DNA of 63,607 nt, counting the filler, from Parasitella parasitica NRRL 2501 (Eukaryota; Fungi; Mucoromycota): NCBI GenBank assembly GCA_025201805.1. It is 7 parts of 7 records of this genome, joined end to end, with 100 filler letters (N's around TTAATTAATTAA, not from the genome) between each part and the next. Parts side by side here need not be neighbours in the genome. Positions count along the whole stretch, not along the records: positions 20,260 to 46,083 come from MU619406.1; 6 more parts are not named here. One strand, 5' to 3'. Under the pieces are notes generated by a model. That model made no database searches. It saw nothing but the letters and a program-made list of their open reading frames with translations, and was not told the DNA's origin. A program made the position numbers and the translations under genes. Shown piece by piece: positions 3,572 through 46,083 of this stretch; position 1 is the first letter of the stretch, and each line of letters begins with the position of its first letter.

Positions 3572-5692
3572 TTATCTCATCAGCAGCATCGACAAAAATA
3601 CCATGATCATAATAGAAAAACCTGCCATTGAATTCTGATGAACAGCTTGAATCCCTTGCGAAGTAGGTGTAGGGGATGTTTTTAATCCATGGCTTGTGTT
3701 GCTATCATCACAAATGGATCGAGACTTTGGGGTTTTGACATTTCCGTCAGTTGTATAGTTTGTCCTTGTCAAGACTGTGGAGTATCCAATAGAGTCCAGT
3801 ATGCGCAAGATCCCAGGCCCAATGGGTGATTTGTACGTCATTTCAACCATCGTGTTATTACTGCTGGACACTGTGTCGTTGTAGGGAAGAACTGGTATTT
3901 CACTGTAGTATGCTTCCACCAGTTGCTCTAATGTCTTGCCCTTATGGTACGCTTCTGTCATCAAAAAGTCAGGTGTGTTCTCGTACTGATCATCAAGATG
4001 CGATATCATCAGTCCAGGTCGATTCATAGTAGGGTCAGTATGTTCGTATAAGCTGTTCGACATGTCTCCCCCCGTCAACAGGGTCATGCTTCGGTAAGTC
4101 TGATTCAAGTAAGGTATCAGAGTATAACTGCTGTTGCTCACTGTTGGTGCGTCAAACTGGAATGTGATTGTTTCTGGTTGGGACATGGATATCCACAGCT
4201 TGTGTGCCAGTGTAGACTGATTCGCCTCATTGAACAATCGAATGAAATTGACAATAAACGCATCGCTGTTTTGTACACAGAAATCCTGCATCTGGAAAGC
4301 GAGATCCGATAGAGACAGTCTGCTCGTGACATTCAGCTCCGTGTCCACATTTACCAAGTACTTGTCGAATATCATATTGGGTTGGAATCCGGTGACATAT
4401 GCTGGTCCTGTGTCTTGGTTGATGAACCAGTAGAGTCCCGGCGTAACCAACTGCAGCTCCAGCGGGTCAATCACGCCATCAACCAGTGTGCGAAATGGAG
4501 ATGCATCTGTCCAAAAGTAAGCTGCCCAACTGCTCAAAAAGCCCAGTCCATGGAGCAGTTCGTGCAGCACCACATACCGGAAATCAACTTGGTGGGGATT
4601 GATCTCCTGTACTGTGCCTTGAGCATTTTTATCGTTCTAAACTATATTAGTAGATGTTTCTCCTGCCAAGTCGTATCTACTTACAAAGAACCAGTACTTG
4701 CCGTTGGGCGGAATTCGAGAGCCATTCCATCCGTCATGGAGGGCCTGCTCAATTTCGCTCGCATTCAGATACATGTCATGGTTGATTTCTATTTCTATAT
4801 CGTACTTTGACCATACAGAGGTGCTGCTATAAGGCGCCAATTGCTTCGCCAAAGCTTGCGGATAAACGTAATTCAGATCTGCTCCGTCTTCGAAAGGTAG
4901 TGTGAATTGTGATGTAGGCGATCCCCAACCATATGTATCATTTGCGCATGTTTTTTCACAAAAGCTGTAATACACTATTCTAATCAGCAGGGAATTCTTG
5001 ACGTTGACCACCCGAGTAAATTCATCTATAGCATATCCTACTGCCTTACTGACTTTGGCACAATAAATGTCGTCAGCTTTGCATTCTAAATCGTATTGTA
5101 CAAGCGGATCCGATGTGTTGGTATATTGGATAGTCGTGTTGGACGGCGCTGAAGTAGTTTGGTTTTTTGAGTGATGAGACAATAATGGATCGTTGTTGCT
5201 TGCTGTCGTCATGCTGGTTGGTATAGTTGTTTGTTGTTGATAAGATGCTGCTGAAATGTCTCGTGTGGGATCTGTGGTTGGAGTCGCTGACGCCGTGTTT
5301 TGTCCTTCTACAAGAGAGTCTTCTTCCATAGTGGCAAGCTCTTCTTCCGTTTCTTCTTCTTCTTCCTCATCCTCATCCTCCTCCTCCTCCTCCTCCTCCT
5401 CCCCATCGTCGTAGTCCTGCTCGTTGATAGTGCCGTCTTCTTCTTTGTCTGTGCTGGCTATTAATATTCTAGGCTGTATGAGTTTTTCATTATTATCTGT
5501 ATTGATATCTTCTGTCACCATGGTTACAGTCGTTGTAGTGGATACTATTTTTTCACCATCATTCTCTTCGAAATGTGATGGACGTTTTGTGAGAAGGGAA
5601 TTGGTGTTGAAAGAATACTCTTTTGCTTGTGCTGTAGTTTGCGATTGCACAAGAGAAAAAAGAAGAGCCTGTATCAAAAGCATGCTCCGCAT
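3572..5692 (-). CDS. Secreted or surface zinc-metalloprotease-like protein (HEXXH), possibly GPI-anchored
   Basis: ORFs 4637-5713 and 3572-4573 join in frame over a 48-nt GT-AG intron (4637-4684), giving ...KYWFF|NDKNAQ...DFRYVVLHELLHGLGF. It has a signal peptide (MRSMLLIQALLFSLVQS), an acidic and S/T-rich linker, and a hydrophobic C-terminus. Confidence 0.8.
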
Positions 5693-6768
5693 TTTGTTAC
5701 GTCGTATAATCATAAGCTATTGCAATTGTTTATGGGCTTTGGATACTTGATAAGTGAAGCAGGATTAATTAAGACAAATTTTTTTAGTGCTGCTACTACT
5801 AGTGCGGCTTTCGAATACAATGAATTCTGCCATTAATCGACTGCTCCTCAATGACGCATCACGGCAAACGAACACCAAGAATTTAGGTCCTGTATGTAAA
5901 TTGTGAGGAGCATATTAGAGCAAAAAGGGGGAGGCGAAAGCAGCGGTCTATGTGCGTAAGAGGGTAATGGTCCGGATCACGATGTTGCACCGTTCCCTTT
6001 CTATCAATGGTGATAATCGGTCTTCTCATATTCAAATGAAACGAATTTTCGGATAATATCATTAACATTTAATGCCCCCTTCTTGGCCGAAAAGAACAGA
6101 AAAAAAAAAGATGATACGATATTATGCAATCATTCAAGTTGTCATTTGAAACTTGTCATATTATAGTTTATGCCGACCGTATATATCAGCTATATAGAAC
6201 ATCTTTGTATCTATTTATGCCTCCTTTTGAACTCACAAAGTAGTTTAATGTTGTTATAAATATATGGCATCTCCTAAACGTTGTCAACTAGAAAGAAAGA
6301 AAGAAAAACCAAAAATAAAACCAATAAAAAAAACCAATAAAAAAAACCAAGAGGCATTGTCCTTGATACAGTAGCAAGATCGGTGGATACACAAAAGGAT
6401 AAACGGCTGATCCCTTGCCCGCCTTGTTGTATAATACTACATGTAAATATATGTGTGTTTCGGCATAATTCCATTGTATATACATGTAATGTATACGGAA
6501 TCTTCTATGATATTATACCATTTATTTTATTCTACTCCAATGACTTGTTCCTCTACATGTTTGTCAGCTGTAAACTATAATATACGGTGCTCGCCTCCTT
6601 ACATCTCGCTGTTCTCTGTATTTGCCCCTCTCCCTTCTTGTCATATATAAATACACATATATCACCGCCTCCTTCATATCTATATAATACAAAGAAATAA
6701 ACATATTTAATCCTCATCTCTTTACATCTTGATTTTTCTTTCGTTTTATGCGCTGGCGATCATAGGAT

Positions 6769-7464
6769 ATGACACAACATCAATCATCACTTTCCATCAT
6801 GGATCAAATCAAAGATGCTGGCTATCACTGTTGGATTCAAATCTATAGTCCATTATTTTGGATTTTGTCTGTACTTATAAACCATTGGAGATTACAAGAA
6901 AACAACAAAATTCTCATTGATGATAATTTTTCGTTCAGAAACATTGTACCTCCACTGAAAAAATCAGTGAGAATATCAAATAATCTACCTCCTCCATCTC
7001 CTCGCATTGTAATTAGCCCATCCTCCCTGCGTCAACGGCGACAGAACCCACCAAATAAACAACTACCAGAGACAGTGCAACCAGTATCAAAAAACAAGCC
7101 TGCTGCTTTATTGTTGCAGCCCAAACCTAAATCTTCACTATCAACTCCAATAAAAATAGCAACTGCGAAAAGAAAACAACCATCTATATTTTCTTCTTGG
7201 AAACAGAAACATTCGCATCATCAATATCCACAAAGAACATCCTTTTTGCGAAGATTAAGCAATAGTAGTACTAGCAGTGGCGATACGGTAAAATCAGAAC
7301 CGTCATCACCATCCATCCTGAAATCTTTCTCCTGGAAATCAAAGCGACAATATTTGGACTCATCATTAGAAACAGGGCATCCAAATCCTGATGCAATCGC
7401 AACAAATAATAGCAAACAACCTCGTATATCACTATCGCATTTCAGAAAGAAGATTAACACTTGA
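6769..7464 (+). CDS. Hypothetical Ser/Pro/Lys-rich protein with a short hydrophobic N-terminal segment
   Basis: 231-aa ATG-initiated ORF with TATATAAA at about 6644. No recognisable domain. Confidence 0.6.
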   Translation: MTQHQSSLSIMDQIKDAGYHCWIQIYSPLFWILSVLINHWRLQENNKILIDDNFSFRNIVPPLKKSVRISNNLPPPSPRIVISPSSLRQRRQNPPNKQLPETVQPVSKNKPAALLLQPKPKSSLSTPIKIATAKRKQPSIFSSWKQKHSHHQYPQRTSFLRRLSNSSTSSGDTVKSEPSSPSILKSFSWKSKRQYLDSSLETGHPNPDAIATNNSKQPRISLSHFRKKINT

Positions 7465-36509: not shown

Positions 36510-37818
36510 GAAAAGTATAATTTACTTGGTATATGTGTTGCTTGTGAATATAAACAGTTGGTATATAATACTATAAAAGTATATAAAAGAGATTTAATTG
36601 CTTTTTTTAGTCAAATGAATCCAAAAGCTTCAAATAAAATAGAAGAAGAGGAAACTTTTTGCTTTAGAAAAAAAAAAGCTAGTACTAATCTTCAAAATTA
36701 AGGGGGAATAAAAGAAAAGGAAGAAGCAAATAAATAAAAGATCTTTGGTATCAAGTTTTCCTCGATTTCCATCGTTTTATAAGCAATTTTGGTCTATATA
36801 GCTTTTGAAGGAAGCACAATTTTTAACCGTAGCAACCAAACCAATGGTTGTACACGGCGCTAAAGTTGATTCTCGACCCGGATGTTTGATTTTGTTGACG
36901 ATGATTTTGAGGCTAATTTGGGAAAACCCCTTTTACGGAACATCCATCTTGGTAAAAATAATGGATCGTCGCTCAGATGTCTTGTATTCACTAAAGTCAT
37001 TTGGCTTTTACAACCGGCTTAACAAGAACAAGAGCAACGCTTTTTATATTAAAGAAGCGAATCTACATCATACTCTCTTGAATTTATGGCTTTTTTTTTT
37101 TTTTTTTTTTTGCTTTTCATTCAAAAAGTGGTTGTACCCATGCAAATCTTTATTGGCATGTGCAACACAATAGAGCACAACGTGATGAAACTTCGTCTTC
37201 TGGTCCTACCTAAAAAGTAAAATATGAAGTGCTACGCTAAATTGTGTAATTTCAAGTCATTTTACTCTAAAGCGCGAGCAATAAGTTGATGATATTTATT
37301 ATTGTATCGTTTGCTTGTTAGTAGTCAAGAAAATAATTAGTTTTATACACAAAGCATTCAAGAGCTGCATTATTTTGGTTACACATACAACGCGGGCGGT
37401 AAATATTGGAGATTTTCGTACTTCGTCTTTATGGGGACTTTGGAGGTCTCTTGACACAATCACTTTAATACAACTTGATTTTGGATACTTGCCATCAGTA
37501 TTGGAAAAAAACTGAATAAATGGGAGATTGTTGATGCTCTAAAGTTCAGATTGAATAGAAGTTACTGTTGCGAGACATCATCATACAAAATATTAGCTTG
37601 CGTCGTTTATAATGGTGCTAGTTACAGAAATAACTGCACTTTTTTTTTGGATACCAACTGCCATTACCATCAACGCACTCTTTAATTTTCTCTTTATCAC
37701 TAAGATTCTTTCCAAATCTAGATAAGCAGAACTTGTAGAGAGAGTTACTGTAAACTATCACCGATTTTCACTTCGCAGTTGCCTACCATGTAGTACACTA
37801 TTTTTTTGCTTCCAAATA

Positions 37819-39425
37819 CGCTATTTTCAGAAATTATTCGCACAAGCTGAGGAAAAATTGCTCATATTTCATTTTACTTTCTGCACGCTTTTTATTTTAT
37901 TTTTTGCACACTTTTAAAAATAATATTTGCACACTTGTAAGAGTAGTTTTTGCACACTCACAAATTTGGCTTTTTGCACACTGTGTGCAAATTAAATTAT
38001 AGAGGTTCTTTATTGAAGCAGGTTTCAAATTTTGAAGCAGAATAGCGACAGAATTCTTCCAAGTCGCTAAAGAGAACATTATGACAAGCTTCAGCGATTC
38101 TCATATTAAGAGTTTCGCTCTGCAAGAGCTTTTCCTTTTTTAATTTACTCTTTACAACCAACCAGAACTGCTCAATTGGATTGAGCTCAGGCGAATAAGG
38201 GGGAAGATAAACACATCCGTACCCACGGCTCTCAATGAATCTTCTGATGCTATCTGATGTATGGATAGGGGCACTATCCATGATAAGATAATTCCCTTTA
38301 AATTGTTCGTGACGATCCATGACATCTAAGGTGCTTTGAAATAAAATTCATATAATGCCCAGTAACAGTTCCAGCAGTCTTCTGAGCCTTACTACCTCCT
38401 GTCACTTTTCGTTTCTTAGAAGCTTCAGCATATGGTACTCTAACTTTGACATTGATGACACCGAAGGGGAAAATGGCTCCCAATATAGTTGTCGTCTTAG
38501 CTCTGGTTAAAGGTTGGACTACTTCAGCTCGAATTCCCTTTTTTGACCAAGCCATTCTCCTTTTTAAATTGATATGAAACGCAGATTCGTCGATAAACAC
38601 ACAGTTGCTGTTAAAATCCATATCGGTCTCAGCCCATCGAACTACCCATTCAAATCTTCTCTGAATGCTTGCAGGCGAATTTCTTTCTTGTGAATGAAAA
38701 TGAGCCTTTTTGAATGACAAGGCGCAGTTTTCTGTCATGAAATTGTAAACAGTGGTTTTTGACACCTTCAAGTCAGAAAATTGGGTAGTAAGGCTTTCCA
38801 TTGCTTGATCTAATGTTGCCGAAGGATGGTCGATAAAGTTATCTTCTAAATGCTTCTTATGTTCTTCACCCAACAATACTGGTCGACCGGCTTTCTTTTC
38901 AAGTGTTAAGTTTTCGGTTTCAATGTGATTATCAGGATTGATTCTTTCCATAATATCTTTTTGATCCTTCTTCAGCCAGTCATATGCAGTTCGACGAGCA
39001 ATACCGAGTTGCTGTCCTGCTTTCCCCGCAGTGAGGACCAAATAAAAAAAGTGACCTTTGACATCGTCTCCATGCTTTTTTTAGTAGTTAGAAGGTCCAG
39101 TTGAAGACGAAACCCCTTTTTTTGGGGGCTTTTAATGTCTTAGGCTTTTCAGGTGGTTTGGAAGCTAAGTAATTGTCGAAATTTACGGTATCGGCTAAAG
39201 GATAACCCTCATTGTCTACATCCATCAAGACAGGCTCTCTGCCGTACTCATCTACAGCGTTGCCATGTCCATCTTCGTGGTAAAACTGAAAGTTCATTCA
39301 AGTAATGTCTTTTTAAAAACTGTGCAGAATTAATTAAGAAAGTGTGCAAAAACTATTCTTACAAGTGTGCAAAAAATAAAATAAAAAGCGTGCACAAGCT
39401 GAGGAAAAAATTGCTGAAAATAGTG
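37819..39425 (-). mobile_element. Tc1/IS630-type DNA transposon (DD34E) with a frameshifted transposase
   Basis: TA on both sides; outer TIR C(G/A)CTATTTTCAG and a 32-bp inner inverted repeat (37882-37913 / 39363-39394). Transposase is in three ORFs (39088-39297, 38298-39041, 37997-38320) with FIDES, IMDSAPIH and PPYSPELNPIE, 34 residues between D and E. Confidence 0.92.
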
Positions 39426-41133
39426 TACTTTCAACAGATCAAATCTTTGTATGCACATTACTGACAGTCTGGCAGGCTCATTGACGCGTGATTTTCGATG
39501 GCATCCTGTTTCTTCCTCACTTAGTCCTACAACGTACTATCCGTTATTTCTCCCGGCTGGAAGATGAACTACATGTGATTTCTTTGATTCTCTTCATTTA
39601 TACCATTTACTATTATTTCGTTGTATATGCCCACATCAGTCTTTTTATTCCCTCAATATGACAGTTTAAGAACTTTAAATAAAGTAGGCCAACTCCCCTT
39701 TAAAAAAAATTTAAAAAGATGTGTAGAGAATATACTATGTTATCAGCGCTCATGTCTACTTTTCAGTTTCACAAATAAACTTCCATTACTGACATTTTCT
39801 CACAGAGTTGAATGATAGTTGAAATCTTTTGATAAAGTGGTCGATTTTACGATACGTTGTGCCAATATTGTAGTCAGGATGTTTGTTTACAGAAGCAACC
39901 GAGCTTTTTATGGGGTTTCAGATTCGATATTATTGTTTCTCTAGAATTAATGCAACTGCCACTTTCATGAGCAAACGCTTTATCAAATCATGCAATCGAG
40001 CATAATTTATTATTGCGTAATATATAAAAGAGTATCTGAATTGTGATAAGTTGAACTTTGTACAAAAGTTCCATCGCTCAGAGATACTTTGAATATCTAG
40101 CTTTACTTTTCTGTGCCTGGAATTTAATGTGAATATTTTATATAGATTTACTTGGATAATGATATGACAATAAAAGGTATTATTTCATTGCAAAAGGTCC
40201 CAGACAAATTTTTAAAAGGCTAGTTTATTTTGCATCAGCTCTAAATGGTAAAGCCTTGATCTCATACCAAATGTAATGATAGTAATATTGCATGAAAAAT
40301 AGGACCTTTTTAAATTGTGGAAGAAAAGAAAGTTCGACCTTTATTATCCTCACGGTAAATAAATGGGAACCAAAAGTATCAATGTTAAGGGTAGTGACAA
40401 GATATCACTATATTAATCAACGAGGAGGAGGTGATTCTTACTACGACGCCGATTTTGCGTCTTTTTGTTAGCCTTATATCTGGATTATCTATCACATTCT
40501 ATAATATGTACATATACGTGATATTAAACCAGAGATTATTATCAAAATTGTGTTGTGCCACTGTAGAAGGCACCACTACGGTGCAACAAGCCCTAATAAC
40601 AATAATGTAATTACCACAATATTAGGGACAGAAAGGTTACTGTGAAATGTCCGATTTATAGTGTTTATCCGTTCTATTAAGGGCATCAAAAGGGATAGAA
40701 ACACTGATTTTACGGGCACTATCCACCTAAAAATGAATTTACCCATTATATTATGTTGGCTTGGAATTAAAATAAGTGTCAAAAGCCATAAAATCAAATA
40801 ACTGTTTTCCATAATGGGTAAAAACCTTTATATAATGTTTGAGTCACTAAACTCGTAGTTTCAATCATGAATGTGATAATAGTCTATTGGAAAAAAAAAG
40901 AAGCCTAAGCGTACACTATAGCATTGGACTGTATGAAAATGACCGCTGAAGGAGTAATGACACCAGAAAACATTGAAGCTTTGCAGCGGCAATACTGGCA
41001 GCCTTGTTAGCCAAGCACTAATCAAGGAAACTGTTTCATTCAGAACAGAAAACCAACTTCTTGAGATTTCCTCAGCGCCGGATTTGCAAATTAAAGGACA
41101 TTGGAGATACAGAACGTTGATTTACGATAAAGT

Positions 41134-41174: not shown

Positions 41175-42028
41175 TAAAAATCAGAGAAAGTACTGGAAGC
41201 AAAGAGAATGAAAGTGAAAGTGACATAAAAACTCGCGTATACTCCAAATAATTCAAAACATTAGATGTGGTCCAAATCTATTAGATGTAATTTTAGTAAG
41301 CTGATGATTTTCATTTTAATAAGCTAGAGACAGACGATGAGATCAACTCGAATTGAATATGAATAAGTATATATTTTGAACATTTATTGCAAATAGCAAA
41401 TGATAGAACGCGGGTTGTATTGTAACAGCCAGTGATCTGAAATATGATTATTTCAGATCAATTGATTAGAACATACAGTTGTGATGAGGTGAAAAGTCGA
41501 GTATAACGTATTGTGGCACTATATGTATTGATTACAAAGAAAGCTTTATCTATTAATTTTTTATTTATTCAAAAAATGGATAATTTGTTAATACAATAAT
41601 GAACATATACGACCATCTTTCATGTTATTTTGCATTTCGACAAGATACTGTAAATACAATGAGCATGATGTCATCTGCAGTGGTGGGTGCATCCTACATC
41701 AAACCATTTCTTCATTTCTTCGCAAAAAAAAAATTTCTAGTGGGCCTGGCATGGGCATTGACCGCCTTTTGACATCTTTCACTTGATACAGAACGTACGG
41801 TTCTAAAAAAAAATCTTAACACGATCCGAAGAACCTTGTACAGTGCTTCCAGCGTCAATTGGTCACCTTACCGAAAAAATTGGTCGCTTTTCCGAAAACC
41901 AATTGGTCAACCGGTCCATTTCACTGCTTAGAAAAAAAAAATCCAACCAGTCCATTTCACTGCCGAAATTTTTTTTTTTTCAACCAGTCCTTTTTTACAG
42001 CTTTATTTTATTTGTTAAACATTTTAGA

Positions 42029-45000
42029 ATGAACACCATCTCTCGTGAGGAAGCATGTTGCATCTTTTACTGTAAACAATTCAACGAAGAGAATGCTCAA
42101 ATCTGTACACAAAGAGTAGATAAGATGGAGGAAGCTGAAATTTGTTTCAGAAGCAATATAAATGAACCTGAGATTGTATGCGAAGCGCGAATATTCGGTG
42201 CTCCGATTTTATACAGCCTGTACAAATCAAAAGAAGAAAAGCTTCGGATGGCATTCCTTATGAGATTCTCAACTTGGTTGTTCGATTTCCACCCTATAAG
42301 GATTTAATAACTACTGTATTCAACGATGCTCTTAATAGAGGCATATTTCCAGATTCCTGGAATGAATCCATTATGACCCTACTCAAGAAAAAAGGGGATT
42401 CCACTGACATGAAGAACTACCGGCCTCTGAGTCTTGCTAATTGCGACTACAAATACTTCACACGGATACTCAACAAACGAATGATGGACGTCTCCGCCAA
42501 ACTGATCAACAGTAATCAAATAGGCTTTGTCCCCGGCAAGTATATTGCTGAAAACGGTCTCCGTTGTCAACTAATTATGGAGGATGCTCAACTGAAATAT
42601 GATCTTGCTGAACAACAATCCACAACAGCCCACCTCTCAAATGACATAGGCTTACTGCTTGACCAAGAAAAAGCATATGATCGCGTTAATCTAACGTACT
42701 TCAAACTGGTTCTGCGCCATTGTGGCTTCCCAGAAAGCGTAGTTTATTGTATCTACAATCTCATGGCATTAAACAAGATCCGCATCAATCTCAATGGCTA
42801 TTTTACGGACGAAGTTTATAAACGTCGAGGCTTCAAACAGGGCGATCCTCTTTCCTGTATATGCTATGATCTTGCTTTTGAACCCTTTCTTCAAGCTATT
42901 CTACAAGATAATGATTATACTGGCTATAACTTTGGCAAAATCAAAAACGACCAGTCCACCACGCAATCCAACGATATCAACACTAGACTTCTCTGCTACG
43001 CAGATGATGCCTTAGTGTTTGTTCACAATCGCACTGATCTTCGCTTACTTAGATACTACATGGATTTATTTTGTAAAGCATCCAATGCCAAGTTCAATCT
43101 TAGCAAAGTTGAGGCATTCTCGCTCTCTGGCCGAGATACTTGGAACTTTTGGCGTCAACCACTCGAAGCTATACATATCCACCACCTCCATTCAAAGAAA
43201 GACGTTATGCCATTGATCTATCTAGGCTTTCCGCTCATTCAAAGCAAAACCCAACGGGTCAATCATATTGCCACAGTCGTCCCTAAATTGAGAGTAGCAG
43301 CTCAGCTGCATTCAACTCGCTCTTTGTCTGTATTGGGTAGGGCAACGGTCATCAATACGCTGATATTGTCCAAATGTTGGTATATTCTTCGCGTTACTCC
43401 TCTTACTCAACAAGACCTCCAAAAAATCACTAGTGTAGCTATCCAATTCCTCAAAAGGGGCATCTTCCCACTACTCCCATGAAGTACCTGGACTCTCCCC
43501 AAAACTAAAGGTGGACTTGGAGTACTCAATGTTACTGCCCAATACTCGGCTTTATACTTTCGCTGGATACAACCTCTGTTAACAAATTCCTCTCATTCAA
43601 CGACCATAGATCCTTTGCATAGTATACTGATTCATTATGTTAACAACGTCAATCGTTCTAGACATCATCAAATTCCGCTGCTACTGCCCTCTTCCAGAAG
43701 AAGTTTCACTAGGAAAGGACGGGTTGCCACTATCGATATTCTATATCGTAGCATTGACTCAATCCCACGAAACTATGACTCTGTTCAGATCAATCATTCC
43801 ACTGCTCTGCATTTACCGTTACAAACTGTCCTCTTTACACGTCCTCATAGTCCATTCCGGATCCCTCCAAAAATTAAGGACATGACAGTCTCTGATGTGT
43901 TTCAATACAATGCTAATAGGCAATTTCTGCATTGGAGGGATACCCAAGATTCTACTCTTCGTCGTTGGAAACAAGCTCCTACTAAACTCTTTCGGGGCAT
44001 TCAGTCTGGAGACCTACAATTGCAACCTTTCTTTCAATCGTTATGCTATCCGTGTATTTCATCCAGTTCAACGTCAGCATCGTCATCAACAATTGACTTC
44101 ACTCCCTTTGCCTTACAATTAGAATTTCCTAACGGGGCGACCGTCCTCTCCAAGATTTCCACCAAAACATTTCGTCAGGCGTGTTCTGATACTTTTGTAC
44201 CTACATGTCTATCATCAATTAGTTCTGACTTCTGGACATTGTTTTGGGCTTTAGCCTTAACTATGCTACAAAGAAATGTAGTCTACCGCTTCATCAACAA
44301 CAAAATCCCACATAAGTCTCTTCTACATCGACTGTTCCCGGGACAGCACCCTTCCCCACTATGTGCCATTTGCTCACTAACAGTTGATTCTCCTTCGCAT
44401 TTCCTCTTCTATTGTCCAGCCAAAGCCAACATTTGGCAGGCTGTTGTTTTCGAATTCCTTTGGCCAACAGTATCTATTCATGATATTATTCAAGCTATTC
44501 GCTCTTTTGATTTCTATGACATTCGCTACAGCCGAAAAAGCTCTGTACCTGCGTCTCTCATCGTTTTCATAGCCTTAACTAACATCTGGAGAGCTCACTT
44601 TTGCTTTATCTTTGATGGCACTCCTTTCACTACAGCCGCGGTTCTGGCCAACATCCGAATCGAAGTTTTAAAACGCATTGAGGAAGACTCAGTTCATTCC
44701 GTTCTGTAGCATACTGGTAGGGTCATAGTTCTGTCGGCAAACTGAACACCTTCTTATATTATTATCTTTTGCTTTCATATGTTTTATCCCTTCTATTTAA
44801 TATCTCTCAATCTCTGTCCCTCAGTATTATTTTATCTCCGTCTGACTAAATCTATATTTGCGCCCGCCTCTTGAGCCAGTTTCACTACTGTGCTTTACAC
44901 GGAGCAATCAGTAAAAACCTTTAAAAAAAAAAAAAAGAAGAAAAGGAAGATCTCTTGTTTGGTAGGTAAAAATAAATGTGAGAAACGAAATCGTTGCTAA

Positions 45001-45902
45001 AAACGATAAAATATAGACAATGACGCGCAAATTGTAGAATTTATAAACTATGTATATCGACCGAAAATGGAATCTTCGTCAAACTCTCCATACAAGTTAA
45101 ACAATGTATATGATAAAGAAATTCTAGGAGTTGTTTGGACTTTCACTAAAAAATTTGACAAGACTACATCTTTGGCACTCACTCAATGGTTGAACAAGCA
45201 AAATGTTGATTTTCTATCAGATGAGCCAGAACGTAAAGTTGTAAAAGGAAACACAAAAAACAAAAAGTTAAGAAGACGTCATCTAAATGTATTGGATAAC
45301 GGATGTTATGGTAAAGCTCGTAAATGGTATTGCAAGATAAACAAAATAAATTAACTCCAGTTTTGTAGTTGATCTTGCAAAAAATATTATAAATGTTATA
45401 CCAAAACATCACGCCTATGTAAACCAGTTAAAAAACGATGGATACCATATTATTGGATATTACAGAAAGTCGAGAACACCAAGTGATAATCGAGCAGCTT
45501 TATTACAGAGAATGGTGGATATAATACGACAAAGATCACTTGTAGAAAAAGTTTACGTATCAACTCACAGCAACGCAAAAGAAGGTTTTCATAAACGAGA
45601 TTTGGATGATCAAAATACTTTAATAGCAGAATTAGATCAAGTTGATGGAGGTACTCAAGGTAAAAAAACTAGATAACAACATGGCTGATCAAATTATAAA
45701 AAAGAAATTTTTCTTTAGACTTCTTAGCTTATATTCATTACGCAGGGTTCACTACCAATATGAGTGATTTAAAAATTATTATAAGGCAAGTAAGCAAATG
45801 ATTAGAAATCTGAAATAAAAACTGAACAAATATTCTTGTAGTGAATATCCCAATATGCAAAAAATGATCATTGACTTATATTTCTACGAAAATCAATTCT
45901 AA
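42029..45902 (+). pseudogene. Disrupted gene with a C-terminal resolvase / serine-recombinase-like domain
   Basis: Removing the LINE restores ...YKSKEEK|EDLLF. Introns 44962-45016, 45311-45368, 45660-45718 and (GC-AG) 45786-45841 keep the frame and give HIIGYYRKS...RAALLQRMVDIIRQRSLVEKVYVS...DGGTQDFLAYIHYAGFTTN. Confidence 0.65.
42242..44932 (+). mobile_element. 5'-truncated L1/Tx1-clade non-LTR retrotransposon with poly(A) tail and 13-bp TSD
   Basis: RT motifs DGIPYE, YRPLSL, LDQEKAYDRV, QGDPLS and YADD; C-terminal CAIC...H....C. In-frame TGA at 43480-43482 (probably from TGG). TSD AAAAGAAGAAAAG at 42229-42241 and 44933-44945. Confidence 0.95.
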
Positions 45903-45905
45903 ATA

Positions 45906-46083
45906 CAGTTGACGAAACTAGGTTGGGCCAATGAAAATAAATTTTGGTCATTTCCAAATTGAGTTGGGACACGATTACAAAAATGGGTGAAAATGGGACA
46001 TGAGTACGAACATGGAGACAATGTTAGTATCTTTCAGAAGAATCAGAATTGTTACAGCTTCTTACCTGCAATATCTTTAAGTT
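45906..46083 (-). mobile_element. Second copy of the Fanzor-element 3' end (terminal repeat plus putative omegaRNA region), cut off by a gap
   Basis: Identical to 61934-62139 except for 9-nt and 19-nt deletions in the subterminal repeats; TA at 45904-45905. Confidence 0.85.

Follow-up and report, generated by a model that had tools for sequence, protein, structure and literature searches.

A two-gene DNA transposon family of Mucorales with a predicted serine-recombinase fold inside Tc1/mariner-like ends

A 63,607-nt stretch of DNA from the fungus Parasitella parasitica NRRL 2501 (assembly GCA_025201805.1; the whole stretch, seven parts joined with filler, is hereafter called the window) contains an interrupted gene, gene A, in the part taken from MU619406.1 (positions 20,260 to 46,083 of the window; contig C170 of the genome scanned, 32.8 Mb in 450 contigs). 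Gene A and its relatives were found to belong to an undescribed, Mucorales-specific family of DNA transposons with two genes, in which an IS607-like recombinase fold lies inside Tc1/mariner-like ends with terminal inverted repeats (TIRs). The copy in the window is a pseudogene of this transposon family. Serine recombinases are workhorses of DNA rearrangement in bacteria and phages and of genome engineering; in eukaryotes they are, to our knowledge, known almost only as sporadic IS607-like elements.

Intact elements carry two convergent genes

Intact elements of the family measured 2.65-2.9 kb and were bounded by perfect or near-perfect TIRs of 24-31 nt, starting with CAGT and flanked by TA on both sides. 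The element on P. parasitica contig C15 is 2651 bp long (TA-CAGTCGTTCCAACGCC...-TA, 31-nt TIRs). A Hesseltinella element of 2.9 kb (TA-CAGTTATTTC...GAAATAACTG-TA) was present in two copies, 99.6% identical, the left flanks of which differ, with the divergence starting exactly at TA-CAGT. TA followed by CAGT-starting TIRs marks the ends in the window and on C15, C22 and C97 as well as in Hesseltinella; the TA, a putative target-site duplication, was read at the ends as they stand. The first-pass annotation, made on the window alone, had proposed an intron-containing gene inside a TA-CAGT-terminated element, and this arrangement is now seen in elements of two genera.

The C15 and Hesseltinella elements each hold gene A, which has four introns and a product of about 350 amino acids (aa), and a small convergent gene B. 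The latter encodes the N-domain alone (73-78 aa), with a start and a stop codon of its own. Gene B was an intact open reading frame (ORF) in at least five elements of two genera, in the right part of the window's element (L013 4130-4357, minus strand), C15, C37 and two Hesseltinella elements. The B sequences are slightly closer to one another than to the N-domain of their own gene A, which is suggestive only. Compact elements encode genes A and B and nothing else; no DD(E/D) transposase was found in them.

Short direct-repeat arrays lie directly upstream of both genes, inverted relative to each other. The units vary by lineage, with 41 nt x 8 in C15, 41 nt in C97, and 12 nt x 11 and x 19 in Hesseltinella; another Hesseltinella copy has a 43-nt period x 32, giving about 64 copies of a half-unit of about 21 nt around the palindrome TGAACCGGTTCA. 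The unit AACCGGTCCATTTCACTGC is common to the window and C97 elements, although their proteins are only about 50% identical. The unit AACC(G/A)GTCC builds 41-nt arrays on either side of the C97 copy as well, and one inverted copy of it stands to the right of the window gene (L013 4418-4440).

Copy number and distribution

The exons of the C97 copy matched at least 25 places in the P. parasitica genome at 30-60% identity, several of them with stop codons. A profile search with exon 3 (E <= 0.001, 1.84 billion database representatives) yielded 711 protein clusters. The full-length members, of 327-386 aa, are all labelled 'hypothetical protein' and originate from Hesseltinella, Halteromyces, Mucor saturninus, Phycomyces and Cunninghamella. 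Every named member that was checked belongs to the Mucorales, and the Atlas neighbours of the family were 100% Eukaryota, mainly Mucoromycota. The same exon structure and motifs recur at more than 20 paralogous loci in the genome and in the 711 database clusters, so that the pattern of the window gene is beyond chance.

No Pfam match was obtained with any exon, with six full-length proteins or with 87 aligned members, and literature searches retrieved nothing connecting serine recombinases with Mucorales. The possibility of a host gene family was rejected, since there are many divergent copies, a good part of them broken, and TIRs stand at their ends.

Two of the copies lie in long perfect palindromes. 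At the C22 locus (L058 1923-3813) the arms are 690 nt at 100% identity and reach 115 nt past the TIRs; at the C29 locus (L055, whole) they exceed 3 kb and include Tc1/mariner transposase genes. Fold-back rearrangement or an assembly artefact could be the cause. The C37 copy (L054, G000:C37:207500-217499, 4563-7262, minus strand) has a long open frame between its first exon and exon 3, matching Viral_helicase1 (PF01443, E 4.2e-21; motifs GVPGAGKT, DEALM, GDSRQ). This frame looks like a fragment of an endogenous alphavirus-like RNA virus, or a captured helicase.

Predicted structure of protein A

The window exons were searched singly, and the whole protein was modelled on a public homologue, P0081 from Hesseltinella (362 aa). 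By its predicted structure, protein A begins with a small N-domain, which is followed by a winged helix, then by a long linker helix and last by the serine-recombinase catalytic domain.

For exon 3 of C97 alone, with 13 paralogues, a model was obtained with a predicted local distance difference test score (pLDDT) of 82. Its two top matches among 48,161 chains in VIA-align were Sin (Z 6.6) and Tn3 resolvase (Z 6.0), with residue 24/25 of the model opposite residue 1 of these recombinases, which places Ser33 on Ser9/Ser10. Foldseek with the exon-3 model alone gave generic Rossmann-type matches only; the recombinase signal emerged with VIA-align of this model and with the full-length model.

The full-length AlphaFold2 model of P0081, made from 87 sequences, reached a pLDDT of 91.6. 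In VIA-align, ranks 1-13 among the 48,161 chains were all serine-recombinase catalytic domains (Z 9.8-6.9), the first unrelated fold being of Rossmann type (Z 5.5). Gamma-delta resolvase (2rsl) scored Z 9.8, with a root-mean-square deviation of 3.2 A over 104 of 115 residues, followed by TP901-1 (9.8), Sin (9.4), a large serine integrase (9.3), Tn3 (9.1), MJ0014 (9.0), Bxb1 (7.9), IS1535 TnpA (7.1) and TnpX (7.0). Foldseek of P0081 against the same serine recombinases gave weak E-values, with probabilities of 0.92-0.98 and target-normalised template-modelling scores of 0.5-0.6. The model held by the ESM Atlas itself matched PF00239 clusters too. The catalytic domain covers residues 206-356, with residue 206 aligned to recombinase residue 1, and its predicted topology is beta1-alphaA-beta2-alphaB-beta3-alphaD-beta4-alphaE. 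Residues 86-177 matched winged-helix DNA-binding domains (RFX, Z 6.2, 73 of 76 residues). Among viral models (BFVD), the best matches were integrase-resolvases of COG2452, the IS607 type (E 2.1e-4, probability 1.0, more than 200 aligned columns), and the next were serine recombinases of giant viruses.

At the sequence level the recombinases were not recovered. The PF00239 Resolvase model had no match on the exons, the six full-length proteins or the 87 members up to E 5, and it found nothing in the whole genome, while the same model matched in 12 of 14 control genomes. Searched against PDB sequences, the family profile hit no recombinase, its sole match being a designed TIM barrel, and hhalign of the family with the single E. 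coli protein PinE aligned only 17 residues around IIGYxRKS (P 0.013). The predicted link to resolvases is thus structural only, because no sequence model recognises the family.

Active-site residues

Among the 87 sequences the motif G-Y-x-R-K-S is near-invariant (G in 84/87, Y211 in 87/87, R213 in 86/87, K214 in 83/87 and S215 in 83/87), as are R238, S239, R259 and D260. The register of GYxRxS agrees with the structural alignments, on Tyr6, Arg8 and Ser10 of gamma-delta resolvase. The suggestion, made from the window sequence, of a resolvase-fold C-terminal domain with this serine in register is borne out by the structure comparisons of both the exon-3 and the P0081 model.

After strand beta3, recombinases have D-R-L-x-R (Asp67, Arg68, Arg71) where the family has D[FY]AGL[TS]TN, the columns being mapped by strand pattern, as an inferred correspondence and not from superposed coordinates. 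Asp at position 67 is kept in 46/59 sequences, position 68 is F or Y in 55/62 and position 71 is L in 46/57. The replacement of DRLxR by YAGFTTN that had been read in the window turned out to be the local version of this family-wide motif. Helix E of the P0081 model is short, at about 14 residues. Resolvase mutagenesis has shown Arg68 and Arg71 to be essential in known serine recombinases. Since both are replaced, the family is either re-wired or not a conventional recombinase. As to membership of the serine recombinases, the predicted structure argues for it, while the arginine motif and all sequence models argue against it.

The copy in the window

The features of the window copy are listed below (positions in the window, strand, feature).

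41839..41840, no strand: TA dinucleotide flanking the left end of the element; TA stands on both flanks in the intact relatives C15 and Hesseltinella
41841..41867, +: left TIR, beginning CAGTGCTTCC / CAGTGCTTCCAGCG; TA and these 27 bases form a 29-nt terminus, TACAGTGCTTCCAGCGTCAATTGGTCACC
41857..41908, +: three subterminal AATTGGTC repeats, starting at 41857, 41878 and 41901
41909..41990, +: three promoter-proximal repeats AACC(G/A)GTCC(ATTTCACTGC), starting at 41909, 41945 and 41982
42029..42241, +: exon 1, first part; N-domain, 71 codons from the ATG, 53% identical to C97 exon 1
42242..44933, +: 5'-truncated long interspersed nuclear element (LINE, a non-LTR retrotransposon) inside exon 1; RVT_1 ORF, E 8.7e-26; poly-A tail
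44946..44961, +: remainder of exon 1 (EDLLFG), donor GT at 44962
45017..45310, +: exon 2, aligning with residues 86-177 (winged helix) of the P0081 homologue model
45369..45659, +: exon 3; linker helix, strand beta1 with GYYRKS, helix A, strand beta2 (VYVS), RD motif; 47% identical to C97 exon 3
45719..45785, +: exon 4 (DFLAYIHYAGFTTN...); compared with C97 and P0081, 11 codons including strand beta3 are missing and H stands for the family D
45842..45903, +: exon 5, first part; stops at a TAA put in frame by a 25-nt deletion relative to the C97 paralogue
45904..46083, +: TA and left end of a nested 3.5-kb TIR element (TA-CAGTTGACGAAAC...) in the last exon, continuing past the end of the piece

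As had been read before, one gene runs from the ATG at 42029 across the LINE and four introns. HIIGYYRKS lies in exon 3 with its Ser codon (TCG) at 45470-45472, and VEKVYVS, DGGTQ/D and YAGFTTN were each located in the gene. The transposon-like TA-CAGTG end, estimated at about 190 nt upstream of the ATG, is 188 nt from it. Of the wider claim, a spliced resolvase-fold gene carried by a DNA element, the predicted fold, the introns and the TIR elements held for the family, but the copy on which it was made is a pseudogene. The end placed at 45903 is not the end of the gene, as its conserved tail resumes beyond a nested 3.5-kb TIR element. The insertion in the last exon, the degeneracy of the copy and the convergent gene B had escaped the first-pass annotation.

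The decay was judged against the best paralogue, on contig C97 (L012, minus strand). Ahead of the YAG motif 11 codons are lost, by which strand beta3 is gone and the conserved Asp has become His. The last intron requires a GC donor, and the 25-nt frameshifting deletion brings a TAA at 45901 into frame. The nested element (TA-CAGTTGACG..., from 45906) has perfect inverted ends of 58 nt (L011 6505-6562 and 9935-9992); past it, beyond the window, the conserved C-terminal tail (..LRLFKCRP..RQRSK) is found at L013 about 3993-4052. The LINE is flanked by a 12-bp target duplication, AAAGAAGAAAAG, at 42230-42241 and 44934-44945. A 5'-truncated tail of the same LINE family also occurs in the C15 element (L056 about 1985-2209), so the LINE that split exon 1 belongs to a repeated invader of these elements.

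Intact copies, a right end and flanking duplications had been proposed as targets for a search: intact elements with TA flanks were recovered in C15 and Hesseltinella, and for the window's own element no ACTGTA right terminus was found, only a decayed inverted match reaching about L013 4506.

Mobilisation of the element

Mobilisation in trans by a DDE (Tc1/mariner) transposase is slightly favoured over protein A being the transposase. We put at about an even chance the reading in which the element is moved in this way and A and B form an accessory module. DDE transposases would act on the Tc1/mariner-type ends, and proteins A and B would be a conserved, element-borne module that probably binds the repeat arrays. 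Such a module could regulate, or could run a modified serine-recombinase reaction that aids persistence of the element.

Mobilisation by DDE transposases is favoured because of the TA/CAGT signature, the match of the C97 arms to a DDE element and the presence of the same TIRs around other cargo. TA flanks and CAGT ends are a general signature of Tc1/mariner elements and do not mark a special class, such as the one that had at first been suggested from the TA-CAGT terminus. The C97 element has 350-nt arms that match, at about 90% identity, the end of the Tc1/mariner element on C178, which encodes a DDE_3/HTH_32 transposase; the common stretch includes the last 59 or so codons of this transposase. 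The window-type terminus, searched with a 24-nt pattern, bounds a 1.66-kb fold-back element on C22 and occurs on a 3.5-kb element on C7 with a different ORF: the first 24 nt of the window's left TIR are unchanged at both ends of the former, where the alignment spans all 29 nt of the terminus, and at one end of the latter. C97-type ends likewise bound elements of 2.8 and 3.3 kb with the same other ORF type (C104, C73), and C15-type ends are found on pairs of 120-250 bp that resemble miniature inverted-repeat transposable elements (MITEs).

Several results weigh against mobilisation in trans. No DDE-encoding element was found with a TIR of the window or C15 type in the readable sequence, large parts of related elements being N. 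The loci of Halteromyces, Mucor saturninus and Phycomyces and one Hesseltinella locus (P0094) showed no flanking TIRs. Compact elements carry A and B only, with A intact and its active-site motif conserved across many diverged lineages, as would fit a protein on which the element depends in order to move. A crossover over 2 bp by a serine recombinase would likewise be compatible with the TA on either flank and the palindromic joint ACTG-TA-CAGT.

These last points lead to the alternative that protein A is the element's own transposase and the element a eukaryotic, TIR-bearing serine-recombinase transposon, a reading that is doubtful. Here the two TA-flanked ends would be brought together and strands exchanged over the 2-bp TA. 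The product, a circle closed by the palindromic joint ACTG-TA-CAGT, would then insert at a TA. Binding of the subterminal repeats would fall to the winged helix and the N-domain, and modulation of the reaction to B. That compact elements of two genera encode nothing except A and B argues for it, together with the near-invariant nucleophile motif, the domain order of IS607 TnpA, TIR and repeat sequences specific to each lineage, and the failure to find a DDE partner for two of the three TIR types. As a precedent, several dimers of IS607 TnpA assemble along the ends of the transposon, and strand exchange takes place across a GG of 2 bp (PMC6188088). Against this stand the aromatic and aliphatic residues at the positions of Arg68 and Arg71, the short helix E, and the finding of the same TIRs around other cargo, MITEs and a DDE gene; IS607-type elements, moreover, have no TIRs (PMC6188088). 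A fuller version, a shade more tentative, would make the family a new superfamily among eukaryotic DNA transposons, with a serine recombinase in place of a DDE enzyme as the mobilising protein, in which A synapses the ends and exchanges them across TA through a re-wired site, with Lys214, Arg238 or Arg259 replacing Arg68 and Arg71, and B acts as regulator.

It is rather improbable that protein A is a catalytically dead DNA-binding derivative, acting as a repressor or architectural factor on the arrays before A and B, comparable to TnpR in its role as repressor at res. The loss of the two arginines and the short helix E would agree with it, as would the two predicted DNA-binding-type domains and the position of the arrays directly upstream of both start codons; the near-invariant Y, R and S of GYxRKS and R238, R259 and D260 are hard to explain without a role in the pocket.

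Very improbable, finally, is one element class of recombinase-like gene and Fanzor, the eukaryotic counterpart of IS607 tnpA and tnpB that the first-pass annotation had put forward: the genome has at least 49 TnpB/Fanzor-domain matches, a TA-CAGT element of an abundant family is inserted in the last exon of the window gene and Fanzor1 is known in Mariner-type, TA-flanked elements (PMC3627910), but 0/49 of the PF07282 matches lie within 5 kb of readable family copies (N stretches occur inside the C97 element and beside the window copy), the closest is about 10 kb from a copy, on C2, the compact intact elements are too small for a Fanzor gene, and TA-CAGT is generic for Tc1/mariner.

Comparison with known systems

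The inverted domain order, with DNA binding N-terminal to catalysis, defines IS607-type TnpA (PMC6188088). Protein A resembles this enzyme (COG2452) in its winged helix N-terminal to the catalytic domain and in ending soon past a short or split helix E, and its elements resemble IS607 in the putative binding motifs repeated near their ends. MJ0014 and IS1535 TnpA, named above among the PDB matches, represent this type of protein. The likeness to IS607 TnpA noted at first extends to the N-terminal place of the predicted DNA-binding domain but not to the ends, and no tnpB partner was seen in the readable sequence. IS607 has no TIRs, no flanking duplication and a GG target (PMC6188088), whereas the present elements have TIRs of 24-31 nt and TA flanks. 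Protein A further differs in its lack of the DRLxR arginines, an extra N-domain, a separate gene for this N-domain and introns, and no similarity at the sequence level was found past IIGYxRKS.

With the small serine recombinases (gamma-delta/Tn3 resolvase, Sin, Hin/Gin) protein A shares the predicted catalytic fold, G-Y-x-R-x-S in the same place and an Asp after strand beta3. Their DNA-binding domain, however, is on the other side of the catalytic domain, and in protein A Arg68 and Arg71 are replaced, helix E is short and there is no Pfam Resolvase match.

Cargo-carrying elements of Tc1/mariner type, such as the Fanzor1-only Mariner elements described by Bao and Jurka in 2013 (PMC3627910), are alike in their TA flanks, CAGT-starting TIRs and lack of a transposase gene of their own, and one subfamily here has TIRs in common with a DDE-encoding element. 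The differences are that the cargo here is a protein of predicted serine-recombinase fold with a small paralogue, each with its own inverted arrays, and that the association of cargo and ends is conserved between genera.

The family is large and intron-bearing, is spread over five or more genera of the Mucorales, human pathogens among them, and is carried by transposons and invisible to Pfam. If protein A is active, it would be a site-specific recombinase adapted to eukaryotes whose active site is unusual, and eukaryotic TIR elements might have a new way to transpose. If, instead, it serves as cargo only, it would be a second case, besides Fanzor, of Tc1/mariner-type elements keeping a DNA enzyme of prokaryotic origin, and a handle on what such cargo does for the transposon.

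Other elements in the same sequences

The nested element in the last exon (TA-CAGTTGACGAAACTAGG...; window 45904-46083, L013 506-3992) has subterminal repeats rich in TGGG/TGGT. Its family is among the most abundant of the genome, with at least 40 end-sequence matches that pair into more than 10 elements of 3.5-3.8 kb. The interior reads N in the C170 copy, which is the one copy read.

The window also holds, at 37793-39430, a decayed Tc1/mariner element whose ends are of another type (GTACACTATTTT...) and whose subterminal repeats read GCACACT; its DDE_3 transposase is split by a frameshift into ORFs 38298-39041 and 37997-38320 on the minus strand. On Hesseltinella MCGT01000014.1 (L061 2629-4378), a 1.75-kb element with ends TACAGTCCTTCCGGAG retains only the HTH_28/HTH_32 part of a Tc1/mariner transposase, and its first 12 bases fit the TACAGTnnTTCC pattern of the window-type and C15-type ends.

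The other conserved ORF of the elements with the same TIRs (L071 646-960 on C7, L063 1840-2109 on C104, L065 3863-5434 on C178) contains ..KWDGV..x..EFSGG.. / ..RPDAT..x..GEAK.., resembling a PD-(D/E)xK nuclease motif, and gave no Pfam match. This ORF may be a second cargo type of TA-CAGT elements.

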